From: Obrimoposthia wandeli
Taxonomy: Eukaryota
NCBI GenBank assembly: GCA_977020255.1
Contig: CDROCS010002570.1
Span: 806,001 to 870,000, forward strand
DNA length: 64,000 nucleotides
Direction: 5' to 3'
The position numbers were made by a program, and so were the translations under genes. This document shows, piece by piece, positions 1-32,200 of this stretch. Below the pieces are notes generated by a model. That model saw only the letters and a program-made list of their open reading frames with translations, had not been told where the DNA came from and searched no databases. The first letter of the stretch is position 1. Each line of letters opens with the position of its first letter.

Positions 1-1394
1 TTTGATTTCATTGTCGAGTTGGGAGAGAAAAAAAGTAGAAATAAAGAAAAAGCAAATTTCACTTGTAGTTGAGGCTAAAGTTTAGGTAACTAACAAAGGA
101 AGAGAAAGAAGAAAGGATTTCAAGTCAGAATGCTGCCCGGGTTCAGTGCACCAAAGTTATTGTTAGCGTGCAGAATTTTGACTATGGCATTCAGAAACCC
201 AAGCAATTGTTCGTATAACTTCTTGATGTGACAAGTCAACTGTTTTATACCAGATGTTTCAAAATTGTTGCAATTACTTCACATTCCCTTCTTTGTCTCC
301 GGAATAGAGTGGTTCGTAATCAAGTTTGTTTTAATAGTCATTCATTTTGACACGAAAAAATAGTTTCAATTGAAATAATTATGGTAATTGTATCATTTTT
401 GGAATAATAAAAATGCTTACGTCTATGTAATGTTCAGATAAATGTAGACTATCTGTCTTATTTTAATACTTACATTTAATTATTTTATTTATAATAAATA
501 TAAAAATATTACTTTAAATTATACAAAACAATAACAAAAATAGTTTTAATAGAGTGAAAATATTTAATTTATTACTCAAAAGTGCTTCCCGTTTTCCATA
601 GTCTTTTTCTTATATCCATGGGTAAGTTGTAAATACTCGAAGCATTAATTTCAAATATTCCATCATTTCGTTTGTTAATATAGAATCCCAAAGATGCATA
701 TACATACTCACTGTATCAGGTTCGATCTGGGCTTTTGTAGGACCTCGAAAAACTTTTATCATTTAATCGACATCAATCGTTTATTTTCAGATTTGCATCA
801 AGACAAAAAAATCATCGTCAATTAATGTTTGTGGTCACATCAAGATGTTTTTAATTTGAGAAATAAATTAGAGTTCTTCAAAAACTCTTCTTGCAGAAAT
901 ATCTTAGTTGTCGAAATTAAATGACCATTTAATTATTATGTTTTCAAACTTCCAAAATTAAACATGCGTTTAACTGTGGGAATGTCTGCCTGACTCCTTG
1001 ACAATTAATTTGCTCATACAAACCGAGTTAGTGCATCGATATTATAACAAAATAGCCAACAAAATAAGTTGATTTTATTTGAGTTAACTTTTTTGGTTAG
1101 GAAAATAAAAAATTGTATATACGTTAGCCAAAATCAAATAAATTTTGTTTAAAGTCTTTTGAATAGTACAAAATTTCAAACTAACTGGATTGGAAAGAAT
1201 TCTTTAATACAATTATGCATGTCGGTTATTATTATTATTATTAAAGTTATATCAATTTTTGCTTATAAATAAAAATAAAGTTATTAATTTATTAATCACA
1301 TTTTAAAATAATTGAAATAAGTATGTTATTCGAAATATTAACAACTTAACAAAAACACTTTAGAAACATTTCCTTTTCGTATTTAGTAAATATT

Positions 1395-1430
1395 AAGCAT
1401 AGATTCGTTGTCAATTTAATATTTTTAACC
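1395..1430. repeat. Short dispersed repeat, second copy at ~9471-9507
   Basis: taagcatagattcgttgtcaattt.atatt.ttaacc occurs in both places. Confidence 0.7.
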
Positions 1431-2479
1431 TAGAAAATTAATATGAATCATTTGCATTAAAAAGTTTAAAGATTTACATTTTTTTCTTCTTCTGAAAGTA
1501 GTTAATAGTTTCAAACTAACTAAAATAAATATTTAAGTGAAAATTTTTAATATTAAATAAAGCATAAATTTGGCAAAAATAATAAAAATGAAACTAGTTT
1601 GATTAACTTATAAATTGTTAGAAATAAATCACCTGGAAATTTAGAGGAATTCATTTTACTTTATTTATTTACCTATTAATGAAAGTAATATGAGTGATAT
1701 ATTCAAGAAGTATTACACATTTTCATTTGTATCTAAAATTAGTTACAGAAATAAGCAAAGTTAAAGAAAACCTTTATAATTTAATTCAACATTTATTTTT
1801 ATTGAGTTTGAAAGATTAACCGTTTTGCAACAAATGGTACAAATTGGCGTGTTAACTGTCGCTTACTTTTCAAAATTTTCTTTTCTAACTTTAGTAAAAA
1901 ATTATAAAAATAGTCATCTTTGCATTAATAGAAACTAAGACCTTCAATAGTGATTTGCTACACACCATATAACAAAACACATCACAAGGTTCTAGAGATG
2001 TTTTAACAGTTCAATTATTTATTTACTTCTTTATGTATTTTATTCATTTAATAAGGAATGTGCATTAATTTATTGGTTAAATGTAAAAGAGAAAGATTTT
2101 ATTACATATTAGTAACATCAAATTAAAATTTGATCAACTTTGAGAATCCCAAGAGAAAAGGAAGTTTGTGTAAAAGTACCAAAATTCCTCAGATTGAAGC
2201 AAAATCAAAATCGATGTAAAGAAAGTTGTGCGTATGGTGGGATATGAAAGAAATTAAGTACTACAAAGTATTGGAGAATAAATAAACGTAATCCATAAAT
2301 AATCAAGTAAATTAAATTGTTTTATCAGATTAATAATGTAAATAAAAAAAATGCAGCTTTCAAAATTGGTGTGTATTATTAGTTGATCCAAAATTTAGCC
2401 AATGACGAGTTTGTACTAACTAAAGAAACAATTTCCAGATGCATTCTTATAGAAAATAATAGGGTACAAATGACAAAAA

Positions 2480-3020
2480 TATTCTAAAATAAGCCTTGGA
2501 CTCCATAGCACCAAGTAGAGCCACAGTCTTCAGATAATATAAGGATTTCAAGAACGCAAATTGAAGGAAATTCCTAAAACAACATTCGAAAAGGCCAAGA
2601 AATATTCACCAAGTAGCCAAGTAAGATAAAATACCAAAACGTCCCATTAATGAAACAATAAAATAGCTCAGATATAAAAGTGCACTAGGAATGATTGACG
2701 TTTCAAAATATAAATAAGAACTCCACAGTGTGGCTAATATCTGATGAGTCCTGGTTTTTCTAATACCAAAAAAGATAAAAACTGGTCATAAGTAGGGTAA
2801 GTTTGAATGAAAATCGTTTGTACATTCCTCAGATTATTTATAATGTTTCAAAAAAAAATTGGATTTGATTTACTGATAATGGTAAGTTTTATATTGAAGA
2901 AAGATATACTCGTTTTGTCAGTGCATGACATCTCACAGCTTTAAATTCAAAAGCAAGCTCCATATTCTCCAGATACTAAATCTTGTGATTGAAGACTGTT
3001 CATGTTTATAAAAACGAGAT
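2480..3020 (+). mobile_element. Degenerate mariner-type transposase relic
   Basis: Fragments APSRATVFR*YKDFK, WLISDESWF and QAPYSPDTKSCD*RLF resemble mariner HTH, first-D and YSPDLAP motifs; many stops. Confidence 0.75.
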
Positions 3021-3949
3021 TATATTGAATTATATCATTTGGAAGTAAGGATAATTTGCTAAAGAAAGCGCATAAAATTGTAAAAAAACATACAATAAGA
3101 AATGATACTGAGTGAATAAAAAAGGTTCCAAGATTATTGGAACAATATCATAAAATAAAATGAAAGTTAAACTATGTACTAATTTGCAAAAACAAGTTGT
3201 TTAAGATTAAATGAACAAATTTATAAAGATATTTGAAATAAATTTACTGTTTGAAATGACATTGCAATATTACTTAATTTGTTGTTAGAAGTAGGAAGAT
3301 ATGAAATGTGATGAAGCAAATATCGTTGATGAGTAATATGGGAGATCAACAGGAGAATGGAGAAGGCGTGGGTATTACACGAGGCGTTGTGAAGAAGATT
3401 AGGGCGGAGAAAATCGGATCAAGAAGAGAAAGATAGGAGATTAGTGGAGCCAGATAATGAGGAGATGGACAAGAAAGTTGGAAGCAGGCAGTAGGGAAAT
3501 AATGATAATTAGAACATTAATTCATTATTGTAGAAGCAGTAGAAGACGGCAACAACGATACAAATACAAACATCAAGACGATTGTGCTAATATTTCTACG
3601 TGAATTTTTTGTTTCCCATTTCAACTTATGTGAAGATAAATAGTATTGAAAGCTTCTTGTGTAGTGATGTTCGTTTCTTATTAAATATATGGGCTAATTT
3701 CCGATCTGTATTATAAACTTTACTTTTTCATTTATCCAACGAGATTGAAAAATAATTTCTTTTTGAAAAGAATGCAATTTAATTTTGGAAATTCATTATT
3801 TTTAGATTTTATTGTTATAAATGAAATGAAATATAAACACGTTTAAGTAAGGACTTTCAAAATCCATTGCTCTCTAATTTGTCGAACAAGAATTTCAGTC
3901 GAATTTTACTTATTTTATATACAGTTTGTAACATTATTATTTGACCAGA

Positions 3950-4430
3950 ATTTAATGAACTATCTACCATCAGTATAAAATTATCGCTGATTATTTTCAA
4001 ATATTCCACAGCTTAAAAGCCATATATGGTTTGCCATTATCATCAAAAATTCCAACGTCATTTATCATCATTTTTCAGTTTAACATACTCCATAAATTGA
4101 TTTATTGATCAAGCAGCTCCATTTGGCGTGAACCAAATATTTGTACTATTTTTAAAGCAAATCTTAGTCGCACTTTTAGTCATTTTTGATTTGGTTTTGG
4201 TTTTAACAATTCGGCAACTTATGATACGTCAAAAATCTTCTTAATAGACAAATGAAAGATATGATCTTTTGATACTCTTCAGAGAATGACGCTGCTGTTT
4301 TACGTACAAATCCACGATATCTTTCTTGGAATTCTCAGTAGACTTGCTTAGTAATTATGCTTCTCTCACATCTTGAAAATTTTTCTGGCCTACCATGATA
4401 CCTTTTGACACCATTTAAAATGTTGTTCTT
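3950..4430 (-). mobile_element. Degenerate Tc1-type transposase relic
   Basis: GRPEKFSRCERSII (GRPR.LS motif) and LKVRLRFALK (K.RL.FA motif), interrupted by stops and frameshifts. Confidence 0.55.
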
Positions 4431-5208
4431 TGATAATTTTTAAAATATAACATATATCTTTCAGAACTTTCTTTTTCTTTAAAATATATTTTTTGGGTGT
4501 CTAAATTTTTATATAATTTTTAAAGATTTTCTCTGTTTTTATCTGTAAATTTTCTAAATAATCAAATAAGTAACCCTTATACAAAATACAGGCTGCATAT
4601 TTCGTAAACTAAAATAATAAATAATTGTAAACTTATAAATTTCTTTATATTATATTAAAGAAATTAAGTAAAAATAGTTGATTGAAATTGTTAAGTTGGT
4701 CAAATAAAAATGTTAGAGACTCTAAATGCAATCGAAAACTTCTAATTTTTTTATGAGACATCAAGTAATTTTAAGAGAAATTCAAATTATATGATCCTAA
4801 TAAATGAAATTTCAACAACTATTTGAAAGTTACAGTGCAAAGTTATATCAGAAAAATTCATTTTGAGCATGCATACAAACTGTATTTCTTGACAGCAATG
4901 TAAAGTATATTTTCTCAGACTGGGGATGTCCAACCGCCTGAGTTAACCGTACTACGTGGATAAAACACTAGTAAGCGTTCTGAAGGTGGTGGTATGTTCT
5001 CTTGTTTGAGAAAGTGCACTAGATACTCTGTGTGACTTACTAAGAATTGAAGTGGTAACAGTTATTTCGAATCATTATGCATATATATTTCAAAAGAATG
5101 TCGAAACCTTTCCGACTTGAGAAGCGTTATGAAGAATTTCGGTGACAAATAGCTAAAGTTACACCAGATTGCTAATAAAGTAATACGCCCGATTATCTAT
5201 CAAGGAAA

Positions 5209-5249
5209 TCAATGTGCTTTTGTACATGTGTGATAGCTAGATTCCGGTG
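5209..5249 (-). CDS. Candidate terminal exon (APESSYHTCTKAH-stop) after a 48-nt intron
   Basis: tttatatag|CA CCG GAA ... CAT TGA. The 48-nt intron is in frame, so spliced and unspliced reads both end at TGA 5211-5209. It may instead be part of a long intron. Confidence 0.35.
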
Positions 5250-8200
5250 CTATATAAAATATGTTATTTTGATAAGGTAGTAAGCAAAATGTATTACCTT
5301 CTTTCAGAAGAACATCTGTGGAGATCCATGCACAGTCTATTTCTCTGGTGAAGTCCTGAAGGGCTAGACTGATGTCTTCGTATGTACCCGGGTCTTGGTA
5401 ACGATGGTAAGTGTGCCGCGGGAGACTGTATGCTGTATGGGAAATAGTCAAGGCTCATTTATTTGGGAATTCTAAATTATTTTTCTAAACTGTATAGAAT
5501 AAAAATAATTTTTGCTCTTTTAAAAAGAACCATTTTCTTTAGAGTAACAAGCGTTTGGTAAATTGAGAAAAATTATTTTAAAATAAATTACTAAACAAAA
5601 TTTACTATTGTTATTTATAAGTAATATATTGAGTTTTTCGAAGCACTGAGAAACAACTTAACGGCTCTTACCAAGGTTAATGAAATATCTAATTAATATA
5701 TAATAAATTCATTTTCAGAATATTACTCTAAAATCACAGAAATCTTTTTGAATACAAACACGGGAATCATATATATTATGCTGTCAATTTTTAGTTACCA
5801 CCTAATATGTATTAGAGTTTGAAGAGGGTTTTTCACTAAAAATCTTTTTTTTCCGGTTTCTGGTAGTTTATTTGCTTGTTCCCAAGTGAGCAGTTAATCA
5901 GTCGAAAATTGAGGAGAGAATCTGGAAGCAGTGACTGTGTTGCTGGGGTCAGTATATAATGGAGTGCAAATTGGCGGAATGCAGTGGCCAATTAGGGACC
6001 TCTCCATTTATCAGGGTGAAGAGCCGATGTTTATGACGGGAAAATTGGACTGAGTCATTACAATCTGTTGCACATTTCGTGATGTATCTGGTTAACCCCG
6101 GGGTAGGCTCGACTGCTAACTAGCGTGGTAGGACTACTCATGGTCAACTGTTAGTCATCAATTAATTTCGACTGGGAAATATGAGAAACTTCCATTTGGG
6201 AAATAATTTATTGGAGTGTTGATAATTTTCATTTTCGTATGTCATTTATTCAGGCATAATAACTTAATTGGTCCAATTTTGCAAGTTTACGTACGAATAC
6301 TTCAATCCGACTTTGCCTAGCACATAAACAGGGAAAACTGTTTATTTATTAATTATATTTATTCTACTTCCATGTTAATAAAAAAACCTAAACATTGCCA
6401 ACTTACGCACTTGACATGCCTAACATTCCAAATCAATTCGATTTTATGGGAAAGTCGGGTTATGTTACATTATGTACAATCTGCTGCAAAACATTTATTG
6501 ACACTTGAAATTAAGCCGGATTTAATAAATTAGATCAAATACTTAAGTCTTGTATTATAATCAGAGATCGGAACCCGAGGGGAACTGTACCGTTGTTTTA
6601 TAAATTCTGATTAACCGAAACCGACATGGAAAACAATACAATGTTTCTATTAAATTCAAACTTCTTTTTATTTGTTTAAATAGATATCAAAATTTTGTTA
6701 TAGATATAAAAATCTCAATTAATTTTTGTTAATTATACAGTGTATTCCATAAAAAGAAGATTTTCAAATCTACTTTACAACACAAAAGAATGACATATTT
6801 TAATCTTTTTGAAAATATAAGTATACCATAGAAATTTCATTATTTTTTTCCACTTCACGATATAACCTCCTTTTTGTTAATTACAGCTCCAAGTGTTATT
6901 GGTACGAAATTTACCACTTTTCAAAGTAAGTATTTGTCAAAATTTTTAACTCATTCTTCTATTGTTGATTTTAATGAAAAATAGCATCTATTGATTTCTG
7001 GTAAACTTTATATTTCAGGTCCCCCCAAAAGAAAAAGATCTTTAGGTTGAGATCTGAGAACATGTTGACACATGAAAATTCGAAATGATAATTCAAAACA
7101 CAACTATTTGAAATTGTCTTCTTTAAATTTTTTATTACATTCTTTGTGATGTGAGAAGGAATCCCATCTTGCTGAAAAATTGTTTGTTTGAGTCTGATAC
7201 GTTTCTCGTCCAGATATGGTATGATACAGATCTTTAGCATTTCCAGGTATTTTAATCCATTTAAAGTTCCATGTCAATGTTAAGTTTGGAACTTTAAGTC
7301 ATATGTAAACCCACAACAAAAAAAACTTTCTTTTCATGTAAAATTGTACTACCTTCATTCGTACAAAAACATCAGACCAAACACTACCTCGGAGAAATTT
7401 AACTACACTTTCATCTTTCCAAAAAATTTAAGGCTAAAGCATCATCTAAGCAAACTAAGTATAAAAACAAACAAAAAGCCTTGTTATTGTCGCTTCAGTA
7501 TCAATTTTAAATTCCGCCATTTAAAACTTTTAATTATAAAATATTAAAACAATTAGTAAAAGTAAAGATATTTTAAAATATCCCGTTTTGTAGTCAATGA
7601 TAAATTATTTTCTCAATCATAAATATGTTATGTTAAAGTTTTGTTAAATTATATTTTTTGGAACTTATTTTAAAATTGATATAAAAACGTACTGTAAAAT
7701 AATTGGTGTATTGCATTTTTATTTTTGTAAAATTTTCCTACTGATTTGGAACCCAAATCGCAACTGAAATGAACTAGAACGAAACTTTGTAATAAAGGAG
7801 CAATATTGTATAGGTTTGATTATAAAAATTTCAAATGTTTGCTATAAAACAGTATTGAATTATAAGTTTAACATTAAAAATGAAGAGTTTTATCATTTAA
7901 AAAAATAACATCATTTAGGTGTTGCAAAACTTTAAAGTCAATTTGTTATTTTTAATAAATCATAAAGAAACACACCACAATATATTCTTTAGCATCTAAA
8001 AAATATAAATAAACCTTAAAATTATAGCAAACATACTATTAAAAATAATAAAACTGGTCATAAGGGTTTTCAATTTTAAAATAACGTAAAAATTTAATAA
8101 AACAGTAAAAAAAATCACATTTTTAAATTCTAACGCTAAAATATAGTACTAAAATGTGATTTAGAAAGTTAATTATATTTTTGTTGTTGCTATAAAGATT

Positions 8201-11200: not shown

Positions 11201-14200
11201 GTAACTGGTCGTGAATGCATCATTGTGATACTTTATTATCCATATCCTCGTAGTATTGACTGAAACGTTTATGTAATATTGCACAGTTTCACATAAACAT
11301 TTATATATTTTCTACAACTCATTTTTTCTCTGTTGTTGTATATTGACAGATGTATTAACAATCTGGTTACATTTAGTTTTTTCTCATCACATAAAATGTC
11401 AGTTTCACACAATCATTGATTTCACAACGAATACAAAATAAACCGCAATGAAATTTTGAGACTTTGTAAAGTTTTCTTTTTAGGGTCTAACTATTTTCAA
11501 TGGGAAATATATTATTTTTTCTGACAAAAACCGCATCAAAGAGAGTACTGAAAATAGCATAAAATTGCAAATGTGAAGAAATATATGAAAATCCTGAAAA
11601 CATATGTGGACAATATTTTTCAATAGTGCCTCTAAATCTAACTGTCGTCAACTATATAACCCATTTATTTTTTTCAATAAATGACCAACATTTTCAAACG
11701 TCTAGGGACCTGAAAAGTTTATCGACTACAGCACGTGTTATCTTCGTTTTCTTAACCACGACGAGAGAGGTCAAAAACCACGTTTTAGGGGATACCTTTT
11801 TTCAGCAAGAATTTCTCAACAGAAGTGTAAATTTACAGATTACAATTAATTTTATTTTAAAACAATTTTTTTTAGAATTTTTTTGAACTCTATTTTTGAA
11901 TATCTAAATTTATCTTCAAAAATGATGTTTATTAGTTCAGATTTGATCTAAGCTGGATTGTCACATTTAACTTATCTTCAAGCTAAGAATCTTCAAACTT
12001 ATCTTCATTAAAAATCAATAAACTCAATCCAACTAAATCCCCAAGTTCTTTCTGGCAATCATCAAGTACAAGGATCACTTTGAAGAATAAATATAGCTAT
12101 TTAACAGTTATATGGGGTTTGTGTGAAATACCGATAAAGAGAACCGAATCCAAAAACCATTTTGAGGATTTTTGTTAAGAAAAAAGTTCAAATCCCCTAC
12201 TCACAGATTGATAAAAAAGTTGAAAAATGTTAATGCGAGATCATTTTAAGATAACATAGCATGACAAAATAAAAGCAAAACATAAAACTAACGTAAATTT
12301 AATACTGTGCTGATATCTTAATGCAATAAAGATGAATTTTTGGATAAAACTACTGCAAACAGACCCAGAATGGCACTAAGTAGCACTTATTAAGTAGTTC
12401 AATTAGACACAAGTTATATTGAAAATATTAAAGATTTTTCTAAATATACAGGCCAAGATATGTATTGCAATGTCTTGTTTAAATCTTCAAAATGTTATTA
12501 TCTGAAGTCAAATATTAAAAAATAGAATAAAAGCCTCTAAAATCGATACCCAAATTAGTGAATTGACAAATACAACACTTATTTATCAAGTGCGATCTGA
12601 TGTGAACACTTGAAATGCTTGTATTGGTTTGTTAAGTTCTCTAAACGTTAGAATTTCGTAATCTGTATCCGTAATATGATTCTCTATAATATTCTCTTTA
12701 GTATCTACATGATTTAATATACATCTTATAAGTCGTGTTTAGAACACTTCTAGAACAGATTTCACAACTTTTGATGCAGCTGCCTTTCTCCATATTCAAA
12801 GAAAGCAGCCAACTGACGCTAAATCTGCATAATGAAGAGGTTTTGTGATTTCCTCTACAGTACTTCCTTTTTTAGATTCCATCATAGAATATATCTGTAA
12901 ATATTTCATGCTGGCTGCTTAAAAATCCTCAGAAGACGACCAGTTTCTGTATAGAATGTTATAGAATCCATATCAACTCTAACTTATTTAAATTACACCG
13001 GATCTGTAAAAAAAGTGTGCACTTCTAAAAAATATAAAATCTAGATTAATTTAATTTTAATTTTACTAATATAAAAGATCACACAGTACAACGTGAGCAT
13101 TAATGTTCACTCAATTAACAAAGTTTTTTAGGAATAATTTTGCATCCTGATAACGACAAAAAAATAATTTTTTACACCATAATATCCCAAAAGAAATTCT
13201 TCTTATTTTAGTATATTGTAACATAATATACAGATACAGATTATGAACTGACTATGTGTAGATAACCTTTATTTCTAAATCGATATAGAACTTTTTAATA
13301 ATAATTTGTAATAAGCTAACACATTTAGACTAGAAAAATGCTATTTCGTTGAATGGGAATAAATGGAAAGTTATTATGTAGTACGCAGAGGAATTATTAC
13401 TGTTAAAACCTCTAATAAGCAATATTTTAGGTGCGTGTAAAATTATGTTGCTCTTTTCAGTGAGAAAATTCTCAAAATTCAAAAAAAGAAAAAGACAGAA
13501 TTTGAAATGTCTGTCTGATTCAAGATATCAAATTACATATTTCTGTACTTCTATTTTCAGAACCATTTCCTGTTTAATTTAATTATCAAATTAATGTTAA
13601 TATTAAATCATTGAATTAGTTTCTAGCTTACTTTTAAATGTAAATAGAAAAATTATCTTAAATAATCAACAAATTCTTTGAAACTTACCACTAGAATAAA
13701 TAATTTGGTTTGTATGGTGATTTTCAGATACCTTTTTCTTTGTCTTTGTCACTTTCTTTTCGTGCTTGTGCCTGGAAGAGAGAAATCCTTTGTAAAAACC
13801 AGTTGAATCGAACATAAATGTGGAAGTAGAACATCGTATTACAGAATTGTGCCACCTGTACTTTCTAATATTAGGAAAAACATTAATTTATTTTGTTTAT
13901 CAAGTCTTAAGCAACAATTTAATAATTAATCCAAGTGACATTTTAAATAAAATAAACAAGTAAATTGTAGAAAAATGTAAATATTGAACAACAGAAGACG
14001 GGAACTTCAACGTAATTGACTGGCACTAAATGGGAAAGATGTGACAAGACAGACGGGTCTGACAAGGTACATGCCAGAGCTGCACTGGTTTCTAATAATT
14101 GTTCGAATATATTATTTATTTAAAAATGTTCGGTTTGGGAATCGCCCTTATATGGGAATAAAATCCTCAATTTTGAAACTCCAAGTTCAATCAATTTAAG

Positions 14201-17200
14201 AAGAAATAAAGATATTTAATGACTGCAGTTTAAACATAGAAAACAAAAAAGAACATTGTATTTTTTATGTGCCCTTGTCTAAAATCCGCAGCTTATTTAA
14301 AGAAAAAAATTGTAAAAATGAATAACCATCTACTTTATATTTTTAGTGATCAAGGGCATCAAAATCTGCATCAAATTCAGTATCAAAGAGTTCAAATATC
14401 AACATATGCGTATAAACTATTGATAAGAGAATGTTCTAATATGGAAGAATTTGGAAGAGATATATAGACGGGCTTTATCAGAAAGGGTTCTATCCTCACC
14501 TGTACTGAGAGAAGGTGGCAATCTGGCGGCGCATGCAGAAGATGACTACCACAGCCACAACAATGAGCACCACCATGAGCAAGATAGACCCCACCACCAA
14601 TAGAACAACGTCTTTCTGGCCTGCTGAAGAGTGGCTGTCGTCGGGACTGGCTTTCCCAGATCCATCTATGCCGCCACTCGTTCTCTTGTCCTTAGAGGCT
14701 CCATCAAGGGTTTCGGAAGGGTTTCCAGAGTCCAGGAAAAGTGTTTTACCGGAGTTTGGAGCTGGACTGGAGCTATGAGACAGTGGGAACTGTGAATGTT
14801 GTTGCTCTTCCAGTTCAGGCCTGGGGAAAGTCGGGCTCGAACCTGGAGACAGGAAGGTTATTGGTGTCATCTCTGTCAAATACGGTAAGTCAAGTCAAGG
14901 TCAAGTAAATTTCAAATTAACAATATTCCACTGTAACTTCAAGGTTATGTCAAGCTTAATTAAGAACAAGGTGTTGTCGAGTCTATGTTATGCCGAGGTT
15001 TAAATATCAAGACTAAACAAACAAGTACCAACCTGGACTTTCTTTGACCGTTTTAAATTTTGCAAATTGTCCCCATCCTGATCTGCTGCGTGCTCTTACC
15101 TGAAAAATGGCGTAACTGATGATAAAACATTAAATTTCGCTTCGTAAATATTTACTCCTGAATAGACAATTTTATATAATTGTTAATGACACATTATTTG
15201 GACAAAATTCTCGCGAAAAAACTTGTTTCATAAATGTGCAGCTTTATGTGATTTTAGAAGTATAAATTTCCGCAAAATTTTCGCATAACCCTCTTAATCA
15301 GTTTTGATAATCTTATAAAACATCTTTTAAAATGAAAAATATAATACGTTGGCCTCTAAACGATAACACACAAAAGCTAACTTATTTTCAAAAATACTTC
15401 TCACTATTAATTTAATTATCTACAAATATTGATCAATACAAAGTTAGTCCAAAAGCTTTTCAAATGTAGAATATAGTCATTATATCTTGTTTCAAAATCC
15501 TCACATTTTACAATATTATTATGTAAACTATTGAAATGATTGATTTAAAACAAGTAGTTATTTATAAAAATTAATATTCAGTACTTTTTACACAGATACA
15601 CGAAAAATTCTAATTACATTATTTTGTTTTTCAAATTAAACGTTTTTAATTCAATTTATTTTGAATTTTACAATTTTCTATATTTTTCCCCAATACATCC
15701 TGTGGTAGAATAATTGAATCAACTACAATTTCTAGAATAAAAATTATTTCACTGATTGCTTTATTTCAAATAAAGATAGAAAACTAAACAAACATACCCG
15801 AAAGGAAGGGCGTTGGGAAATTCAAATACTCTAAACATGGAATAGTTGCGCCTTTATGATATAAGCCTATAAAACTTTATTATCTCTTCCATGTATTCTA
15901 TTGCTATCTTTTCTGAATTCTGTTTATAACAATAGATTACATTTTATTAGTAAAAGCGCTTATTAGTAGTGGGATTGACCCATTAGTTGAGAAGGACTGA
16001 CACATGTGTGTTAATCTTGAAGTAATTTTTACCAAGAAGTATACCTCTTTAAAATGAAAAGAAAAATTTACTCTGAACATGAACTCCCTAAAGCAATCGA
16101 AGGAACTCACCTTAGCCACAAAAATGACCAGTTTTCGATCATCGACGTCCGTGAAGCGAACCTCTTTGGAGATTGTGAAGACGTGCCGCTGGAAGTCAGG
16201 AAACTTGAAGACGGAGACCTCTGACAACTCGGTGGGACTACTGAGCGCTAAAAGAACGACCTCGAATTCCAGAGCTGGGAGCTTTGTCAGAGAAACCTCT
16301 CGCCACTTTACGAGAACGGTTCTTCCGGTTTTAGTCAAGGTCATCAGCTCCACGTTGCAGAAAGTCTCTGTGAATTAGAAGAAACAAGTATTGGTAAATT
16401 ACTGTCAATCACAGTTTATTAACAATCTTTAAATATCTCGTCACACCAGTCCTGAGCCAGATTTCGATTGAGGGAATTAACTTTTTCGTTTGCTCTATTC
16501 CACTAATTAGATAAACCTCAATTTAAATCGGTCGACATCTTTCTTTTTATGACAATTTACTGATTTTCGCATCTTTTAGCTGATTTTTTTAAAATTCCCA
16601 TCATAAAAATAGTCCACGGAATGAACTCAACTTATTATTTTAATTTTATATTAAAGTACCCCTATATCATAATTAAAAATAAATTAGTCGATGTCGCTAA
16701 CATTTATTATATTATATTTACACACACGATACTCAGAACCTGAAAAAAGTAGTATATACAATATGCGTAAATAGCTATGTTGAAGTAATTTCAAGGAATA
16801 AATATGAAATTGTTTAGTGGCTTTAAAAGCTAAATGTCTATCAAATCACTGCGCTTTATAATGTTAAATTATGAAAAATTAAAATATAAATAAATAAATT
16901 CTTATTTATAGCAATAAATATTGAAGGTCAAAAAAGAACGAATTAAAATAAATTGTTTTTTTAAATAAATTAAGATATGTTTAATAAATAAATTGAGACC
17001 ACGAAGAGATCATGAAATATGTATTTAAGAACATGAAGTGTTACAAAAAGGTATTGGAAATAAAGTACAGTACTTCTAATCATTCGTTCCAAATGTCAGT
17101 ATCTATCTACTTGATACTTGTTTTACAAAGTTAAAGAAATCAAAGTAAGATGGTGATATAAACGAAAAAATCAAAGAAAAAGAACGTCTACAGCATAATG

Positions 17201-20200: not shown

Positions 20201-23200
20201 AATAACTTACATGATCTGGTCAATCTAAAATTTTGTTTTATTTTCACAGTTTTACAGATTCTGTATGTCTAGATGCATTTAGTTCGCTAAATGTGTCAGC
20301 AGAATATTAGTCCGAATCATTCAGAATTTTGCAGCAAAAATAGTGTTCAATAAATTGTTGATTTTGGATTTTGTGATGTAGCTTTTAATTTATCATGACA
20401 TCAATAGTAAATAATAATAGTAACCATAGTAAAAGTGATATTTTGATATCATATTTCTAGTAATAAAATTTTGACACAGTGAATGAACTTTTGACGTAGC
20501 TCCATATACATTTGACAGAACGAATGATTCTTTTGACTATATTCGCTATATTAAACAATAAATAGATTCCATGACCCATCTTTCTATGTTTAAATTATCA
20601 TTTTATTTCATTTAGATTACTGATATTTACTAAATCTGTGACTATTTTGTTAATAAAGTCAGTTTTGTTTATTTCTCCGACTAATTTACTTGCAAAATGA
20701 TCAAAATAGTCGTATTTCAGTTTCACTGATCACTATTTTGGGTCACATGATAGAAAAATAAAAAACAGCAAATACAGTTGATATTCATTCTTCCACTATT
20801 TTATTCTATATTTTCCCTCTCTGGCCATTAACCCTCATTCCCTCCACATACCCGCATCCAACCAAATATCCACTAAGAGTTAAACTAACCCAGCGGGGAA
20901 GTAAGAACAGATTTCTTGGCAGAACTTTGTTCAATCTCGAACTGGCTGGTCACATAGCGACTGATCTCATTGATGGTCGTTACCTTGAAGTTGTACTCGC
21001 GACTAGGCAGAGCGCCTAGAACAGTGACCCTGCAAGGAAAAAGTATACATAGTCACGAAACACAAAGAGCGATACACCCACTTGTTGCCATACACTGACG
21101 ACGAAGGCAGAAACTGAAGCTTATTCGGGCAATTGGTGCAGTTGACCCTGTAGAAGAGCCCACTGCTATTGGTTACCACTTTGTTATCCATAGACGAGGC
21201 AAACTTCTGCTGTGGCGAGGGTTCCCAGGAAATCAAGATGCGAGCCTGATCCCGAGTATCGATATTCACCTTGATTGGCTTGCCCGGTGGTGCTGTAATG
21301 AGGTTACGAGACTCCAGATAAACGAAAACATCCCAAGAATCCGGTGGACATTATTTTATATTTAAGTAACTAAACAAATAAAAGTTTCATATCAACTTCA
21401 TTTCATCTCAGCTTTCAACTCATTTCTTCTACTGGATAAGCATTCTCAATTTGCCAACCTTTTTCCTATTTTCACAAAACACACTCAAGATCAAGAACTT
21501 TCAATGTTTGATACACTTCTCAGAAACTCTGTCGCGGTCGATTCTGTCGATTTTCATTCAAGTGAGTCGTTCTTTGAGGGAGGAATATGTCAGAGACTTC
21601 TGAGGGTTTTATCTTGTGTCAATTTATGAAACAATTTTAATTTTGTAGTGTGTCTGATGGAATTTCACAATTTATTGGTTCTTGAAACTGTCAACCATGT
21701 TTTGTTGTAGGTACTTAAATTCTGGTCGTCCAGTGGTGGTTAAACCAGAAACTAAATAAATTGTCTTTAATTCTTCATTGACGTAGGTATTTCTATAATA
21801 CGACAGAGACTCGTCTCACTCTCATTAAAACTTTTACTTCGTCCTAAAACGAGACAATGAAACTAATAATTCTGAAATGAACAATAATAAAGTCGGATGG
21901 TCGCAGTTAACAAAGGTATATTGGGATATTTATATCCCTCATGTGGAGGGAATATAAAGTTACACATTGTTTCCTCAATGCAGCGTTCATTACTGGGACA
22001 CTGTCGATTTCGTTGATGTACCCATTTGTCAAAGTTGAGTGATTAGAATATACAGACTTGAAATTGACGACTGTTAAATTTTCCCACGTCATAAAATTAC
22101 GGAGAAAGATGCAAATTGAAAATTGATTTGCATTTTATGTATATTTCAAGATGAAATTAGGAGAACAAAATAAATCGTTAATGCTCATCCAGTTTATCAA
22201 TGTTCTCGTTATGGCGAGGCGGAGCGGAATGTTATTTTTTAACCCCTTGACTTAACCATGATTTAATGTCGACATCCGTATGAAATAGATGACACATTTC
22301 CTGATCCCACCGATACCTTTAGATGGGATATTTATTTTGAAGAGGAAAAAGCAAAACTAAAAGAATGACAAGATGATAAAAAACATTCTGTAAAAGATAA
22401 ACCAACATAAATTAGATAAGTTTGTAGAAACTCTGCATTGGTGTCTTTTAATCAATCGAAGTGTTTCCAATCATAAAAATCCGTTCTTCTGATATACCAG
22501 TAGCTTATTCAAGAGAGGTGAAAGAATATGCTGACTCAATAAAGTTAGCTTTTGAGTCGATTCAGTACAATGAGTGTCAATGGAATGCTGGTGGAAATCA
22601 TAGCAATACTCTCTGAATTGAAAACGTTACACTAAATCCTGTTGTTTTAGTTGTCTTTGGAACAGTAGATCGATAATAATTAAATTGAGCTTTATTTAAA
22701 AGCTTCGTAAATGTTTTAAACTGTAGTGGCGAAGCATTTAAAGTATTCAGAAAATGATTTTAATGCTTCTAGAATCAAAGTTAAAAGAACAAATATGTGA
22801 GCAACACAGAAAATTGCATCAGAAAACCCTAAAAGTATTTCAAAAACATTTGAAAGTTGAAACTTCTCGTTAAGTATTAGTTAAAATTAAATTGAGATAA
22901 TTTTCTTATTGGTTCACAATATATTGAAAGTGGTGATGATAAGGTTAAGGACAGCAGTATAATTAGACTGCTCAGCAAAAATGCTTTTAGATCAGTTTTA
23001 GACTAATGTTATGATTAGGGCAACCAATATTATGCGCATATTTTTATGCGATATGCACATTTTTTTCCAAAAATATGCAGAAAAATATGCATTTTTATGC
23101 GAAATATACACACTTTTCTGTATATCTTTGCAAAAAAGTTATGATGTTATTTAAATAAACTATACAAAATAAAAATCTATACAAAAATAAGCCATTCAAC

Positions 23201-26200
23201 ACTAGTTTAATGATGTATTGTAGTACAGCATCATGTACTGTTTAACCGAACTGGCTGAAAATCTCCTATCCTTTGTAATAATTTTTCATGATGCAGAATC
23301 CAAAGTTGAATCCAGATTAGCTCTATCACATATTAACTGTGATGCTGATCTTAAATATTTTGTTCGTTTAGATTTATTGTTTATCCGTTTAGCCACCGCT
23401 ACTGGTTGCAGTTAATTTTTGTTGCTATTTTATTATGATTAATTAGACATTCTAAGAGTTTTGTAAAAAAATTAGTTTTCAATGTCATTGCTTACACTAA
23501 TTTCTAGCATGTTCCAATAATGGAACGTTGGCGGTTAAACGGTTAATGAATTCCCCATCCAAATATGGCTTACTACTTTTGGTAATTTCATGAGCAATAA
23601 TAAAACTCACCTTAGTTGATATTTCCTTTTTTGCGTTTTGGCCAGTAAAATCATTTTGCTGTTGAGATATATTTTGAGTTAATTTCTGTGCTAATTCCTT
23701 TCTAGCTTCAGAAGTTAAGTTAAGGCCATATTCTAAATGTTTAGTAGTAAAATGTCTTTTGATGTTAAATTATTTGAAAATTGATACCCTTTCCAAACAG
23801 ACAGACAGCTTTAGTTTTCACTTGAGTAAAAAAATAATTCCTTCTCCATTCTTCATTGAAAACGTGACACTCATTTTCGATTTTTTTTTATTCATTTTCT
23901 TTTTGAACGGTTACACAATTGCGTAATATGTTAACAATTTTTTAAACAAAACGCAGATGCATGGTTAAATATTTTAGTTTATGAATAACTATATTTGACA
24001 AACTTTAACACTACGTGCAAGTGCAGTTTCTTTTTTGAAAATTTAATCATTTCTGTTGAATTGCAATAGCGAGTAGTGTTTGTTACTACACATTCTTAAT
24101 TTTTTGGCAAGGTAAATTTGTAGGGCTTAAAAAATTATTTCAATAGCGTATAAAATTTGCCAAAATGAATATTATAACAAAAAAAGCTACTTTTATATTT
24201 CTTATTTAAAATAGCTAGCAGTAAAAACGGTAGCGGGAAGCATGCGGCCCGCGGGCCACCGTTTGCTCAGGCCTGGTTTAGAATCTTGTTTTACAACTAC
24301 TTACTGTGTGTTGTTTAATTTCCCCATGTGATATTTTGTTCAAATTTTTACAAGTACGAGAAGTTTTGTTTTAGAGAAATTTATCTTATCGTTCCTATTT
24401 TGTCTAGCGATATTCATAATTAATTTTCAATTTCAAAATCACTTCAAAAAAAAGAAGGGCTGATTCAGAAAATTTGTCTAAATCTGAGCCCAGCTACCGG
24501 ATTATATTAGTCACATACCAGTCAATTGCAGGTCACTACTTAGTTTTGTTCCGTATTGACCTAAATTAACTTCAGTGAGTGTATAAGCGGGACTTATAAA
24601 TCTGGATTTTAAGGTCAATCTGGACGTGAGACAGTTTTTTATTCTAATCAACTTTAAGAATTAGGAAATTTCTGTAAATTTCTATAAATATTAGATGGTG
24701 ATAAATTATCAACAAATAAATTTTAAAAATTATGACAAGCCATCAAGCGAGAATTATTTTCCAGAAAAACTAAAGATAAAGTACACATTAAAACATTTTC
24801 AGCAAATTATCTTCAAAAGTATAAAACTGTTATCATATATTTCAAGCTTTATTACACTCACTAAAATGGATATTCTATGCAGATTTTTTTCAGAGACTGT
24901 TATTTTTTATGAAAATGTTTCTTTTCAATGAAATTCTCTACACAAGCCCGGTATAATTTGGTTACACGTTCTCGCACGGACTCTAAACCGTACATAAACA
25001 TTGTTATTTCGAGAATGTGTCAAAATATGCACTAGTTGTGTAAATAAATGTGTGCTTTCATTGATTTAGCAAGGGGTATCCTTTCATCTTAATCATTTAA
25101 ATGTTCAAGTTAATAAAATAAAATTTATGACGAATCCATGCTGAATATTTGCTGAATATATGTATTAAACTTGAAAATAAGTAATAAAAATGAACAAAAG
25201 GGTTGTTATATTTAATTTTGGATGCTTTTTTGAGCTATTTTATTAGGGTAAATATAAATTTTTATAAGTTGTATTTGCCATAGAAATAAATGGTTAATAT
25301 TTTTTAAGATAAATAGTCAATAGTATTAATATTACTAAATTCAGTTTTATTTATATTAAAAAAATGAGTATAGCTTACTTGTTAATACAAGAAACTCTTT
25401 TGTAGAAAATATTTGATCATTTAATTCTATTTTTACTGAATTAATAAAATGATAACTTATAATGTTATCTTTATTTAAAATTGTTTATTTTAATATTCAG
25501 AGGTACCAGTGGGATTATTTCCTTGTTAAAGTTAATTCAAATATTTATTCGAGACTTTAAATCTGAGTTATGACTATTTTTTTTCCATTTTACTATTATA
25601 ACTTTTTTAAGTTTGAGAATTTTATTTAAATGTACAAATTGCACATTTTCTAAAGTTCACATGACAGTGTTTACAAATGAAGTGTCACCTTTGCAATTTA
25701 GGCTCGTTGGAGGTCCTGGGAGACTGTAGAAGCCGTTCCTGCAGTAGCAGCGAGTCGCTCCCATTGAGCTGTGGGAATTCCTGGGACATTTGACACATCC
25801 CTCCAGACCGATGGTGTTTTTGTAATACTGAAAATTGCATTCTGCAAACAAAGATGGATGTTTGAGAGTTTAACTATTAAAATTGTAAATTAAATGTAAT
25901 ATATATTTTTGGTGATTGTGTTTATGTGTAGTAGAACTTCTCTAGTATAAGTTGCTACCATTTCCAAAAGAAATTATAAAATAAATAAACAATAGCGATG
26001 AAATTTTTCCATTTTCAGATACTAAATAGATTCCACAATAAAAGAAATCCGGATTTATTGAAGCAATTCAGTCATAAAGTCAAGTTTTGAAATGTTTGAC
26101 AAATGTTTGGCATATGCGGCGGGTGAGGTAACATGTACCTTCGAAGCAGTTCTATCATTTCAATGACGCATTTGCCAATGTGCAATCTAGCATTGTCATA

Positions 26201-29200
26201 TCCTTCGGCATATTCTGGACGTTTTTCCTAAGATTTTTTAATCAAATTGACGATCACCATTGATTGTTGCAGACAGTTCCAGTTGCTCATAATATGAAAC
26301 GTCTTTCAGATTCCAAAAAAAATCCACAACATAACCTTAATTGCATGATGATTCCCTTTTGGCATTAGTCTGGATTGACTGATGATTTCCTTTTCTTGAA
26401 TTGTCGTTATAAACCCCCTTTTCATAATCAGTGATATTTCAGCTAAAATAGCTTTGTTGGTACATAATTCGACATTTTGAATGAAATGAAAGTAAATCCT
26501 TCTAAATATATAATCAAAAGCTTCATATACGAAGTCAACTTAACCCTAGGTTTCTATTTTGAAAATATTTCAACGACATGTAGAGAAGTGATGATGAATT
26601 TATATATGTTTATGGACTGCTATTTCAATAAGTTATTAATGTGTTTGCGTGAATAACATCCCAAAAACACAATATTCACATCAAACATATAAAAGATTAA
26701 GTATATATCGATAATTTATATTTAAAAAAGGTGTCCTTTAAATAGGTTGATGGCACATAGAGAATAAAAATGAAAGCATATATGAATTATTATAATAAGT
26801 AGTACACGGCCAATACCTATTCAAATACCCCATATTTACTGCATGTTTATTAATTGTAATTATCACTTCATGTCTTTGCATAAAATTGACACGGATATCT
26901 GCGTTGTAATAAATGGTACATATTTTTGTTGTCGAGTTATCCATTGTTGAAAAGTGGAATATTTTTTCTGGCTATACTTGCAGTTCCCAGTATCTTAAAG
27001 GACATGTCATAGTAAAAGACCAAACCTAGTCACAATGAACGGTTATTGTTTAAATTGTTAACAAAGCAAACATATCTTCAAAATCGACAAAATTAAATGG
27101 AAATGCAGGAAGAAAAAGCACTGTACAGAAATTCAATTTCTCAAATAGTTATCAAGACTCCCATAGGAGAGTTGGACTACATCCATTGGACCATATCAGA
27201 TAACGATAAAATTTGTTTTCATTTCCATTTCTCTTCTTTATCTTTCTCCATTGTTTACAGATCCCTTTTCGTAGTAAATAATAAACTGCAAAATCTCAAT
27301 AAAAAATGTATGATGGGAATCCAAAAACGCAGAGAAGAGGGAATGGGAGGGAATTTTTCTCCTGTATTCGGATATGTTGTAAATCTCAATTTTAAGAGAG
27401 CTACGATTCTGAACTGAACTTTAGAGAAGTGAAAGAATGTTGATTTTAGTGATGAAGTTTTATTCGAATTTATCAAAAGACCTAAAGACGCGAAAATTTA
27501 CCTTAATTATCCCTTAAATATCGATATAGTTAATGAAGAAAAGTTACGTTTTTAGGTTGCGATACAGCTGATGCACCTTCTGATGGAACATGGTTTCTTT
27601 TGATAATTATTTTCGGGTTTTCTCCTTATTTGATATTTACAGTTTTTAACAAAAGTATTAACATGAGAATTTTGACTATAATAACTTTAAATTATTTGGG
27701 GTTCACGATAATGAATTTTGTATGTATTTCATTTAATTACAGATATAAAATTAACATAAATTATACCGAATACACTTTTAAATAACATAAATATACAGTA
27801 ATATCCCTTTATATGCAAAATTTGGGAACGCCCCAAAGTAACTTTATGTAGAAAAATAAAATAAATCTATGTAAAATATTTTTGATACTTGGTATTTAAA
27901 AAATTAAAACTTTGACCTCTTCTCTCATATCATCAATTTCTTCTGCATTTGATTTCACTGTGTCAGCAAAGATTTGAATAATTGTTTCTATAACATCTTC
28001 CCTAGATTTAGCTGCGAGTTTTATAGCTTCCAAAATTAACAAAATATAAATTTAAACAACTCAAATAGATATGGAAAACATTTTTTTAAAAGTACATTTT
28101 AATTGTTTTTCTTCTAATATGAATTATAATGTTATTTAATGTATAAATTCAGCAATCTTTCCAGAAATTCATTTAAAAGGAGATATGGTACCTTCAAAAT
28201 AAACGTAATGAGTAATAAAATTTCTGAAAGTAATTTGATGCAATTTTTGGGTGTTTCAAATATCTTTGAAATTTACGGTCCCTGTGAAAGTTACTTGTGG
28301 AAAAATGGCCTGAGACTGAAATGAGCTACACTCTCACTCCAGAAGATCAATCTGAAACAAAGACAAAAAAAATATTAAGAAAAGTTGTATAGATAGTCTA
28401 ACATTAAATTAACCGGCGTAGACCTTTATTCAACTTAATTTTCCATTTTGTTTTGATAAGCCGGAAACATGGAAGAAACAAAGTATCGTCACACCTGCAT
28501 GCCTTATCAGAGGGAAGGTATTATCCTGTTACAAGACACCAACAGTGTGATGTGGCATCTAAAGATTTCAATGTTTCCCTACAGTTAATTTATTCATCAA
28601 TTATTTTATTAAATTCTTTCATATAAACAAACTGACAAAACATAAAAAAGAGCTTCAGTCATAAAATTTACGGCACCTGGTTTTTATCAAATCTTCTACT
28701 TAGAGCTGGGTTTAGTACAGTGAAACGTCTGTCATATTTCCCATTCAGTATATTTCAATATTTGATTTTGATGGCAAGAAGAGTGGAACAAGCTATCTCA
28801 CGTTCAGCGATCAAGGGTTTAATTTTGACGTGTGGATTGAATATTTTAACAACATTTTCCAAATAAAATATTTCGAGAATTCAAGGCCATTTTTATAAAA
28901 CATGAATGTCAAACCACCATGAGTAATGTCCCATTAGATGAGGCGCTTTATAAATATATCTTCTCATATCGAGTATGTAACGAGATATGTCTTATGTGGA
29001 TGGGAAGATGTCAAGTCCAGTGTTTACTAGATAGAGAGAGACTCACTGACGCAAGTATTCTGGTGGGGCTCATATCCGATCCCGCACTGGCACAGCAACC
29101 CAAAAACCGACTGACGGTCCCAGCTTCCGCTAGCTCGACAGTATGCCGTGGGGCCGACATTGGCCCCTTGGCCAACTGGGACCGCGTGCTCCACACAGCG

Positions 29201-32200
29201 AGCAGCCACTGGTACAGCCCTGGAGCGGATTGCTGTGGTACGAGACCACACCAGCCGCTGATGCATCACCTCTGGACACTGCTGGTAGAAGACGCTAACT
29301 TCCTTCAGCATCGCACATGAGCCAGTGTTGCGCAGTGCTAGAATCACTCCCGCACGACGCACTGGAACAGCAGCCTCGTGGACGTTCAGGATGTCTTCCG
29401 TCCGGTCCTTGTGCTCCCACTTTCGGTTGGGCGTTACCTTGGACACCGTCAAAAAGTACCTGCATTTAGAATGGCATGGTTCATGTCAGTAGCAATATGA
29501 AGATATACCTTAAAAATCCCAAACAAATGACCCTAACATTTAAAATGTAGGATCTCGGACATTTTTTTACTTTTAATAACCATGAAGAAAAGTGTATCAA
29601 CTGGAAGTAGCAAGGTTCACCCATCGATTCTGGTTTTTCAGTATTCGCTATCAATTACAATGCAGCATTTGAAGCCCTTTCTTTTTGATTTTGTCACGTA
29701 GTCTTTTAAAATATTCGGGAGGCTTTGCTTTTAGTTATTTGTGTTTGGTTTCTAAATATATTTTCAGTCTACGGAGTACCAAACGTTTTGGACCCAATAA
29801 TGACAACTTACACATTGTGGACTTGAGTTTCCAAGACCCGAGATAAAACTCAGTTTTGTGTTGGTTTCTAATTTTCTCTTCGCCTTAACTCTAACGTGTG
29901 CGATGAAAGGAAGTATGTTGTTGCGACACTATGATTAAACTAGCTACATTTTAAATATAAATAAATCAATACGACCAGCAGCTGATCAGTCAACGTGTAA
30001 GCACTGAATTGGAGAGTTTTTGGTGAGCACCATTGACTAGCTAATGAGTTGAGAAGATGCAGATTAATACATTAACTAAAAGGTGGCGTAGTTTAGCAAT
30101 TGATAAAACCCAAAATCACGTTGCAGTACCCATACATACTCTCCACAGCAAACACGTTGAAAAACTCTGAACCAGACTATATATAAATGAGACGTTCAAA
30201 ATCTTAGTTCTGAATTTAATTAGAGATATACACGGGGTGTGAATATTTTAACTTGAAAAAAGAAAACTCTGGAGCACAAACCTAATCGAACTATCAGGAA
30301 CGTAGTTGTATCTGGTAAAGGGAACGATCAGAAGTACTGGAGATGAAATGTTGAATCGTATGATTCAATACGAATGGATAACGGGTATTTTTGGAGAGTT
30401 GAATTGGTGATGTGGGATGAACTAATTAAAAGAACAAACTAAAAATAAAGAAAAGAGGAATTTATTTGCATACATACAAACTGCATTTTGTCCATTACTG
30501 GGAATATGAAAATGTAAAGATATATATTTGAATTAAATTTTCCGAAAATTTTTCTTTTTTACTTGTGCTCCCTTTCGCTATTTACTTTCTATGATGTCAG
30601 TTTGATAAGGATTTTTGTATACCAGTGTCGCGATTCCAATAAAATAAACCGTTAAATTTTCACGTTTACAACAATGTTTTTCACCTACCAAAGCATTCTT
30701 ACATAATCATCTTTCAGATAGCAAGATATGATCTCGACTTTATGACAGAGACATTGAAGATGCCATTTCCTTCAGGGTACCACTCTTACTTCTGTCTTGC
30801 GCCCCTAAAACTGTCAAGTACTGGTCTTTTTCAAGGTATCATCTACTAGAAATTGTTCATCTCTAATTATTTTGTCAATACTGCATTTGAATTTTAAAAC
30901 ATATACTACTAAATTTCTACGCATTTAAGATATTTTTGTTGCACAATCTTAATGGACCATTTAATTTCGCTGCCCTTGATTCATTAGCCAAAATTTAGTT
31001 GGAAATTGTTTAATCGATAATAATAATAATGCCAAACACGCACTCAAATCGGCTTCGAAATTATTGATTCGGGTTTATTTCACCCCCAGTTATCATGTCT
31101 GTCAGGTTGCCCAAAATGGCTCCATTTATTTGTCAGTCTATTAATCGGCGATAATGTGATACTTTCAGATTTAAAAGCATTCTATCTACAAATTTTCCGT
31201 ATATTTTTTGTGTATTACAAAGTACAATTTATTTGAATTAATAGTAATATAAAGTATTTTTAATATAAAAAATAATACGATTGGAAGTCACTGTGATAAC
31301 GCTGTTGTCATTCTAATGTTTCTAACGTCACTCTCTTAGTACAGTTTCTTTTTTAATTTCTCATATTTTCATTGCCTTGTGAAAGTCCCAAGGTTAACTT
31401 TGTTTAACAATGAAACACATTTTCAATTCATCTACAAAGATGGAAATATCACCGTTAATTTTCAACTGTTGTAATTGCAATTTAAATTAGCCATAACCGA
31501 AGTTGAGGTTGCCATATTATAGAAGCCTGTAAAATCGACTGTACTGGATCAATCACATATTCAAATTATGTCCAAAAAGCATTTGTTACAACATCAAGGA
31601 TTTATATCGCATATAGTAACATGAGTAGAGCAACCCAAAATATAACCTTAAAACAATTTTTTTAAACTTTATTGTGTATTATGTGACAATTTTCAGTTTC
31701 AGTTTTGTTTAAAATTGATTTAACTACATAAAACTGTCAATAATTACTTATTCTTCATCATTCAAGTATTATCAATACTTTTTTTTACAATCAAACACTG
31801 CTATATTAACAAATATTATTTTATATTGTTGTAATACAATATCATGTATTTTCCGCATTTCCACATTCATGAGCAACGCTTTACAATCATTTTTAGATTT
31901 CATAACACTTTATTTTATTTCGCTAATTTCATTATAATTTCTTCCATCGAAAATGGCTAAATTTATTATAATCCATATCCAATAATGTTCGTATTTAATA
32001 GGCTCTGTCGTTCGACATATCGGGTTCTATCAATATTTAAAAGCACATTTGACAGTGTCTGAAATATTCATAGAATTTCTGCAATTACTGAATAACAGAA
32101 AAAGAACATAATAATGTCGTTTGCCCGAGACTAAATTATGAAGAAGGACGTTCTTTAGATCCAATAGTTAATCGTAACCAGTCGAAAGCCATTTATCGTT

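Follow-up and report, generated by a model that had tools for sequence, protein, structure and literature searches.

A full-length Eph receptor gene of Obrimoposthia wandeli that probably encodes a lineage-specific pseudokinase

The Eph pseudokinase is a well-established concept, and Freywald et al. reportedly observed, in 2002, that EphB6 is phosphorylated in trans when it is in complex with EphB1 (a study in the reference list of PMC8347583). By the usual sequence definition, a kinase domain counts as a pseudokinase when at least one of the β3 lysine, the HRD aspartate, and the DFG aspartate is missing, and the roles of ATP-site and catalytic residues are set out in the same sources (PMC8454701, PMC6993872). 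Arcas et al. traced kinase-dead Ephs only to gnathostomes and remarked in passing on Ephs with altered kinase motifs in some invertebrate groups (PMC6993872). Here, we describe an Eph locus of Obrimoposthia wandeli whose juxtamembrane exon had been read, in an earlier note, as the last recognizable part of a receptor that appears to break off where the kinase domain begins. The window, the whole 64,000-nucleotide stretch of DNA that was analyzed, is C2570:806001–870000 of a 1.35 Gb assembly; 806 kb of the contig lie to its left, and the host genome has a GC content of ~30%. Below, plain numbers are window positions, contig coordinates carry the contig name, and all features of this gene are on the minus strand. 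The exon in question is the juxtamembrane one of an ordinary Eph receptor gene with many exons; this gene covers at least 57 kb from its C-lobe exon to its ligand-binding exon and extends to the left beyond the window. It is an ordinary full-length Eph gene, and on balance we favor the reading that it encodes a lineage-specific Eph pseudokinase, a receptor expected to work as a scaffold or modulator phosphorylated in trans, in the manner of EphB6.

Exons were searched and aligned individually. The Eph-like extracellular exons occur in the expected domain order and are collinear with full-length Ephs in tblastn searches. An N-terminal ephrin ligand-binding domain is identified by PF01404 matches above cut-off on two exons, the ligand-binding-domain exon proper (36142–36441; E = 1.2e-12) and an exon in which this domain ends and the cysteine-rich domain starts (29030–29485; E = 8e-8, with an Ephrin_CRD match at E = 0.002 that is below its cut-off). 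A Cys-rich, Ephrin_rec_like exon follows (25660–25869), assigned by tblastn and by a PF07699 match below cut-off (E = 0.01). The first fibronectin-III region consists of two overlapping open segments (20888–21350) that match residues 252–340 of a bee Eph in tblastn and give a weak fn3 match in Pfam (E = 0.042, below cut-off), and the second fibronectin-III-like exon is an open segment (15940–16374) on which Pfam is silent and which is assigned by position only. The boundaries of all of these exons are approximate. The exon for the membrane-proximal linker and transmembrane helix (14500–14830; ..VVLLVVGSILLMVVLIVVAVVVIFCMRRQ..) has a firm 3′ end at 14500 (AG/GTGAGG) and an approximate 5′ boundary, and it contains a clear hydrophobic helix at ~14530–14600, the candidate for the single transmembrane helix of an Eph receptor. 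Its frame joins correctly to that of a basic micro-exon of 83 nt (13689–13771; ..HKHEKKVTKTKKKVSENHHTNQIIYSS), which lies between the transmembrane and juxtamembrane exons and ends in the donor G/GTAAGT.

The juxtamembrane exon itself (5298–5432; 135 nt) is preceded by ..acag/ and followed by /gtaata, starts with two bases of a split codon, ends with one base of a split Gly codon, and translates in frame as ..YSLPRHTYHRYQDPGTYEDISLALQDFTREIDCAWISTDVLLKE plus the split Gly (YQDPGTYED..FTREID..VLLKE+G). It matches Pfam EphA2_TM with E = 8.7e-6 and aligns with the juxtamembrane region of eight full-length Ephs in both tblastn and MAFFT. YQDPGTYED is set against YIDPFTYEDP in these eight, and the minus-strand translation retains both conserved docking tyrosines; the juxtamembrane tyrosine motif is intact, as had been claimed. 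The GT at 5296–5297 is the phase-1 donor (G/GTAATA at 5298/5297) of an 11.6-kb intron that leads to the N-lobe exon, and its acceptor AG is C2570:799651–799650, 6.35 kb to the left of window position 1.

Four minus-strand exons of C2570, 11.6–26 kb downstream of the juxtamembrane exon, tile the tyrosine-kinase profile PF07714. These are an N-lobe exon (C2570:799649–799387; profile positions 14–92), an αE and catalytic-loop exon (C2570:792376–792278; positions 95–126), a DLAARN..DFG exon (C2570:790629–790525; positions 127–159), and a C-lobe exon (about C2570:785244–784900; positions 166–257). The C-lobe exon was found by a whole-genome tyrosine-kinase profile scan (match at C2570:784945–785271, same strand), and the others were located by motif, by comparison with paralogs, and by tblastn with full-length Ephs. 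All are collinear with eight full-length Ephs on the same strand. The closest solved structures, in single-domain comparisons, are all Eph kinases (EphB4 at 3e-10 for the N-lobe; EphA7 and EphA4 at 4e-24 for the C-lobe), and these PDB matches, with the PF07714 tiling, place the domain nearest Eph kinases. Together, the four exons encode a complete tyrosine-kinase fold. Junctions in the kinase region all have consensus AG/GT sites and matching phases, exon boundaries fall where they do in the canonical C2598 paralog, which is interrupted behind the split Gly, behind FL(R/Q), and behind H(R/K), and open, Eph-like frames run from the ligand-binding domain through the C-lobe. A single junction leaves a choice: either of two in-frame splices (C2570:790525/785244 or 790521/785249) can lead from the DFG exon to the C-lobe exon, and the resulting activation loops differ by two or three residues. 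A tblastn search of 784–812 kb returned no second, canonical N-lobe exon of the kind that a mutually exclusive alternative would need. Searched with the eight full-length Ephs, window positions 1–5200 contain no kinase exon, in agreement with the earlier note, and its caveat that kinase exons might lie to the left of the window describes the true situation, with four of them on the same strand and contig.

A strong donor (CAG/GTGAGA) closes the C-lobe exon, so that further exons are expected. Genome-wide scans with the SAM_1, SAM_2, and SAM_EPH profiles gave no match on C2570, and a tblastn search with eight Eph C-termini was blank over the 80 kb downstream (C2570:706001–786000). The tblastn search to the left of the window that had been suggested yielded the Eph kinase exons and drew a blank for Eph C-termini over that interval. 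A GC-rich open segment at C2570:769629–770024 is a weak SAM candidate (SAM_EPH E = 0.031; BLASTP E = 0.03 against the SAM domain of the paralog), and we do not claim it as part of the gene.

The juxtamembrane exon is present in three sequencing runs of one sample (X1, X2, and X3), none of which is recorded as RNA; the type of X3 is not on record. X1 and X2 cover the exon and the introns alike, indicating that they are genomic. X3 contains a single contig (record 16; 3005 nt, depth 16), which within the window lies only on 5297–5433 and covers the juxtamembrane exon exactly. We read the sequence of this contig for 30 nt past each exon edge. To the left of 5297, it is identical to the reverse-complemented initial 30 nt of the N-lobe exon (exon start 799649), and to the right of 5433, it matches 13690–13719, the end of the 83-nt micro-exon, exactly and uniquely. 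The contig is intron-free over two introns of 8.3 and 11.6 kb. A retrocopy was considered as its origin and excluded; the exon is single-copy in the assembly, and the X3 contig is thus a spliced transcript. The junction between the juxtamembrane exon and the N-lobe exon is used. This one transcript contig from one sample constitutes the splice support and is also the sole expression evidence. Beyond the exon, the contig continues for 1287 nt in one direction and for 1581 nt in the opposite one, and the four kinase exons need only ~815 nt. The splice sites and this length (no less than 1287 nt in either direction) suggest that the later kinase exons are in the transcript as well.

An Eph receptor that is tailless, stopping at the start of the kinase domain, is not what the gene produces in this transcript: kinase exons exist downstream, and in the X3 contig, donor 5298 is spliced to the nearest of these. 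The signals from which such a receptor had been deduced are all in place, namely the phase-1 donor at 5298, an AG at 5251–5250 after 48 nt, and a TGA at 5211–5209; as 48 is divisible by three, splicing and read-through both lead to this same stop codon. A kinase-less Eph ending at TGA 5209 might thus be a real and perhaps tissue-specific isoform made beside the full-length form, since the AG and the in-frame stop exist in the genome, truncated Eph isoforms are known from vertebrates (PMC6993872), and contigs lose rare variants, so that absence from X3 is not proof. We nevertheless regard this isoform as highly improbable. The sole transcript contig does not end before the kinase domain; it splices from 5298 to the N-lobe exon and not to 5249, the two junctions that the earlier note had proposed to compare. 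X3 has zero depth in bins 5207–5280 and no joint from 5298 to 5249, with the reservation that this is one assembled contig and that contigs drop minor forms. The hypothetical terminal mini-exon (5209–5249; 13 codons plus TGA) is intron sequence without X3 coverage. A stop codon soon after a donor is expected in an intron of 30% GC, and an intron of 48 nt would be atypical of this gene, in which six other mapped introns measure 0.7–11.6 kb. A gene model terminated at 5209 would be an annotation error.

To describe the state of the kinase domain, we aligned each exon by MAFFT with eight Ephs (hemichordate, catfish, turtle, seal EphA1, bee, Ciona, lamprey, and Caenorhabditis). The glycine loop, canonically VIGxGEFGEV, reads LLKEGSVLSV, and its core is K-E-G-S-V-L versus G-x-G-x-x-G; two of the three glycines are lost, and the middle one alone remains. 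The 30 nt of N-lobe sequence in the X3 contig confirm the loop as G-S-V-L-S-V-Y-R-G-T. At the first glycine, whose loss had been noticed earlier, the gene has Lys versus VIG(A/E/G)G in 8/8 reference Ephs and in the paralog, and this is the sole lysine across the loop, β2, and β3. The β3 strand, canonically VAIK, reads CDVR. Arginine replaces the β3 lysine in three independent alignments, by phmmer against EphB4, by MAFFT against the eight Ephs, and in a profile of 32 Eph N-lobes, where Arg occupies the Lys column with posterior 9 and 31/32 sequences have Lys. The hinge and αD region has diverged from the canonical TEFMENGSLDSFLR to TEPGSTIRLLPFLQ. Elsewhere, conservation is extensive. αC (FLxEASIMGQF) is kept, including its Glu; the catalytic loop is HKDLAARN for canonical HRDLAARN, with the catalytic Asp and Asn kept; DFG, APE, DVWSYG, GYRLP, and CW..RP.F are all retained; and so is the activation-loop Tyr. 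The paralog on C2598 is a canonical Eph with VIGEG-EFGEV, VAVK, HR-D, and DFG. Among columns that are invariant in the eight references, which range from nematode to mammal, 13/34 are altered in the N-lobe exon and 8/37 in the C-lobe exon, and identity to the reference Ephs is 31–55% per exon, compared to 50–69% among the references themselves. Judged by its sequence, the gene is fast-evolving, with its changes concentrated in the ATP-binding half.

Replacement of the β3 lysine by arginine is the classic kinase-dead substitution. With this lysine missing, the gene product is a predicted pseudokinase by the usual sequence definition; the HRD and DFG aspartates are both kept, and their loss is not required when the lysine is missing, although their presence weakens the prediction. 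From established kinase biochemistry, we infer that a one-Gly loop, a β3 Arg, and an altered hinge in combination should strongly impair both the positioning of ATP and phosphotransfer. The suggestion in the earlier note that this Eph is a pseudokinase candidate has therefore gained strength, as it had been based on the first glycine and is now joined by Leu at the third Gly, Arg at the VAIK Lys, and HKD for HRD. The same note had set its kinase-less reading against a transcript that splices from 5298 to exons with intact kinase motifs; splicing into kinase exons does occur, but VAIK is not intact in them, and HRD is HKD with the Asp kept.

No close relative of the N-lobe exon came to light. 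The nearest Ephs, at 40–48% identity and about equally close, are those of hemichordate, fish, turtle, mammal (EphA1), bee, Ciona, lamprey, and nematode, and the receptor is roughly equidistant from vertebrate, insect, and nematode Ephs. Queried with the N-lobe exon, a library of 1.84 billion cluster representatives contained no close ortholog, the best match scoring 49 bits with none below 1e-10 and the best identity being 44–48%. An N-lobe exon without a close relative indicates either that the form is lineage-specific or that its lineage is unsampled.

Two other readings of the altered domain have to be weighed against a pseudokinase. The receptor could be a catalytically active but atypical Eph kinase, in which the β3 Arg and the one-Gly loop still position ATP and the receptor signals through its own kinase. 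Arginine can mimic lysine in part, and some kinases that lack canonical motifs are active. Here, the catalytic Asp and Asn and the DFG Asp are intact, leaving residual or atypical activity possible; HKDLAARN, DFG, APE, the αC Glu, and the activation-loop Tyr have all been kept, and the C-lobe is conserved much above expectation for a fold freed from catalysis. The loop, β3, and the hinge are degraded together, however, and the change at β3 is the very Lys-to-Arg exchange that kills kinases, at a column where Lys stands in all but one of the 32 Eph N-lobes. We therefore consider an active kinase unlikely. A paralog in decay, on its way to a unitary pseudogene, with selection relaxed on the whole gene and function gone, would account for the per-exon identities lying below those among other Ephs, for the lack of an ortholog in a very large protein library, and for a SAM domain that is not recognizable. 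We judge this improbable, as frames are open and phases correct across at least 12 exons and ~70 kb, the gene is expressed and correctly spliced in the X3 contig, and many structural residues are kept, including LEGVV, DVWSYG, GYRLP, and CW..RP.F.

If the gene does encode a catalytically impaired Eph pseudokinase, in which the two juxtamembrane tyrosines are retained along with the fold and the activation segment, the receptor would bind ephrin and join ephrin-induced Eph clusters. A paralog with catalytic competence, for example the C2598 gene, could then phosphorylate the juxtamembrane tyrosines of the receptor in trans, after which the receptor would serve as a scaffold for SH2 docking or as a modulator, in the way that EphB6 works with EphB1. 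Because the genome keeps at least one canonical Eph, on C2598, this EphB6 mode is the most likely one. A broader proposal, which we find plausible and hold tentatively, is that an Eph pseudokinase has arisen here independently of EphA10 and EphB6, outside gnathostomes, by degradation of only the ATP-binding half (loop, β3 Lys, and hinge), with the catalytic loop, DFG, and docking tyrosines preserved, and that it is expressed as a trans-phosphorylated modulator of the canonical paralog. If this is true, 'dead' Eph co-receptors would be a recurrent solution in animal cell-contact signaling, one that is not peculiar to vertebrates. With its β3 Arg and one-Gly loop, and with a canonical Eph in the same genome, this expressed Eph is a candidate case of convergently evolved Eph pseudokinases, and the gene offers a natural separation between ATP binding, which is predicted to be lost, and the catalytic loop and docking sites, which are kept.

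Compared to kinase-less isoforms of the EphA7-T1/T2 type, this gene is similar in that the genome past donor 5298 permits a protein ending just after the juxtamembrane segment, and different in that its transcript runs on into kinase exons. With canonical Ephs (EphB4, EphA4, EphA7, and the C2598 paralog), it shares the apparent domain order, the exon boundaries of the kinase region, YxDPxTYED, and the overall kinase fold; it departs from them in the glycine loop, β3, HRD, and hinge (TEFMENGSLDSFLR to TEPGSTIRLLPFLQ) and in having no recognizable SAM domain. EphB6 and EphA10 differ from it in that both lack the HRD and DFG aspartates as well, with RLG or GFG in place of DFG (PMC8454701), whereas the Obrimoposthia gene keeps both aspartates and has instead a degraded glycine loop and hinge. 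Only the lysine of the triple is substituted, and none of the named nearest proteins is EphB6 or EphA10; the gene is an ortholog of neither. The likeness to these two receptors lies in an apparently full Eph architecture and a kinase fold without the β3 Lys (PMC8454701), in the retention of the juxtamembrane tyrosines and the coexistence of competent Eph paralogs, and in the expected action, that of a trans-phosphorylated scaffold or modulator (PMC8454701; PMC8347583 and the work of Freywald et al. cited there).

On contig C2570, downstream of the C-lobe exon of the Eph receptor gene with the degraded ATP site, lies a GC-rich open segment of 132 aa on the minus strand (C2570:769629-770024; positions 3629-4024 of sub-stretch L012), which matched an Eph-SAM profile weakly (PF22993, E 0.031) and matched the SAM domain of the canonical Eph paralog on contig C2598 weakly as well (BLASTP E 0.03). 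This segment is a possible SAM exon of the degraded-kinase gene, in degenerate form. Two long minus-strand open frames, one of 642 aa and the other of 189 aa, also lie downstream of the gene (C2570:757677-762863, sub-stretch L013). The 189-aa frame is gag-like in appearance, pointing to a retroelement.

Repeats and candidate mobile elements also occur within the Eph gene region of the window. The intron immediately downstream of the juxtamembrane exon carries a short interspersed repeat (window 5033-5095) with 40 further copies in the genome at 82-95% identity, and k-mer depth in the DNA runs, X1 and X2, peaked at this repeat. The same runs also contained a variant lacking 4889-5038, with 7 different letters in its place. 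Within the 8.3-kb intron, an 89-aa minus-strand ORF (window 6971-7240) containing ..FQQDGIPSH.. and ..DLN..FFWG.LK..VY.. looks like the C-terminal portion of a mariner/Tc1 transposase that has decayed. Two near-identical minus-strand open segments 11,158 bp apart (window 62699-63220 and 51541-52062) lie upstream of the ligand-binding exons and form a direct repeat that is at least 520 bp long. The repeat could have arisen by segmental duplication, or its two units could be copies of one mobile element.

A scan of the genome assembly with the tyrosine-kinase profile PF07714 identified intron-less kinase open frames of ~373-388 aa, arranged in arrays with many copies per contig, on C430, C2216, and C914; these arrays look like a lineage-specific kinase expansion.

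In the canonical paralog on C2598, the donor of the N-lobe exon is followed by a very long (ATT/ATA)-type run, and an inverted partial copy of this exon, 94% identical, lies on the minus strand 1.3 kb downstream of the real one (C2598:84469-84666, sub-stretch L027). The paralog's juxtamembrane tyrosine motif, within C2598:81433-81654 (plus strand; positions 3433-3654 of sub-stretch L014), reads YIDPSTHDD, with histidine in place of the second tyrosine. The degraded-kinase Eph gene retains both tyrosines.
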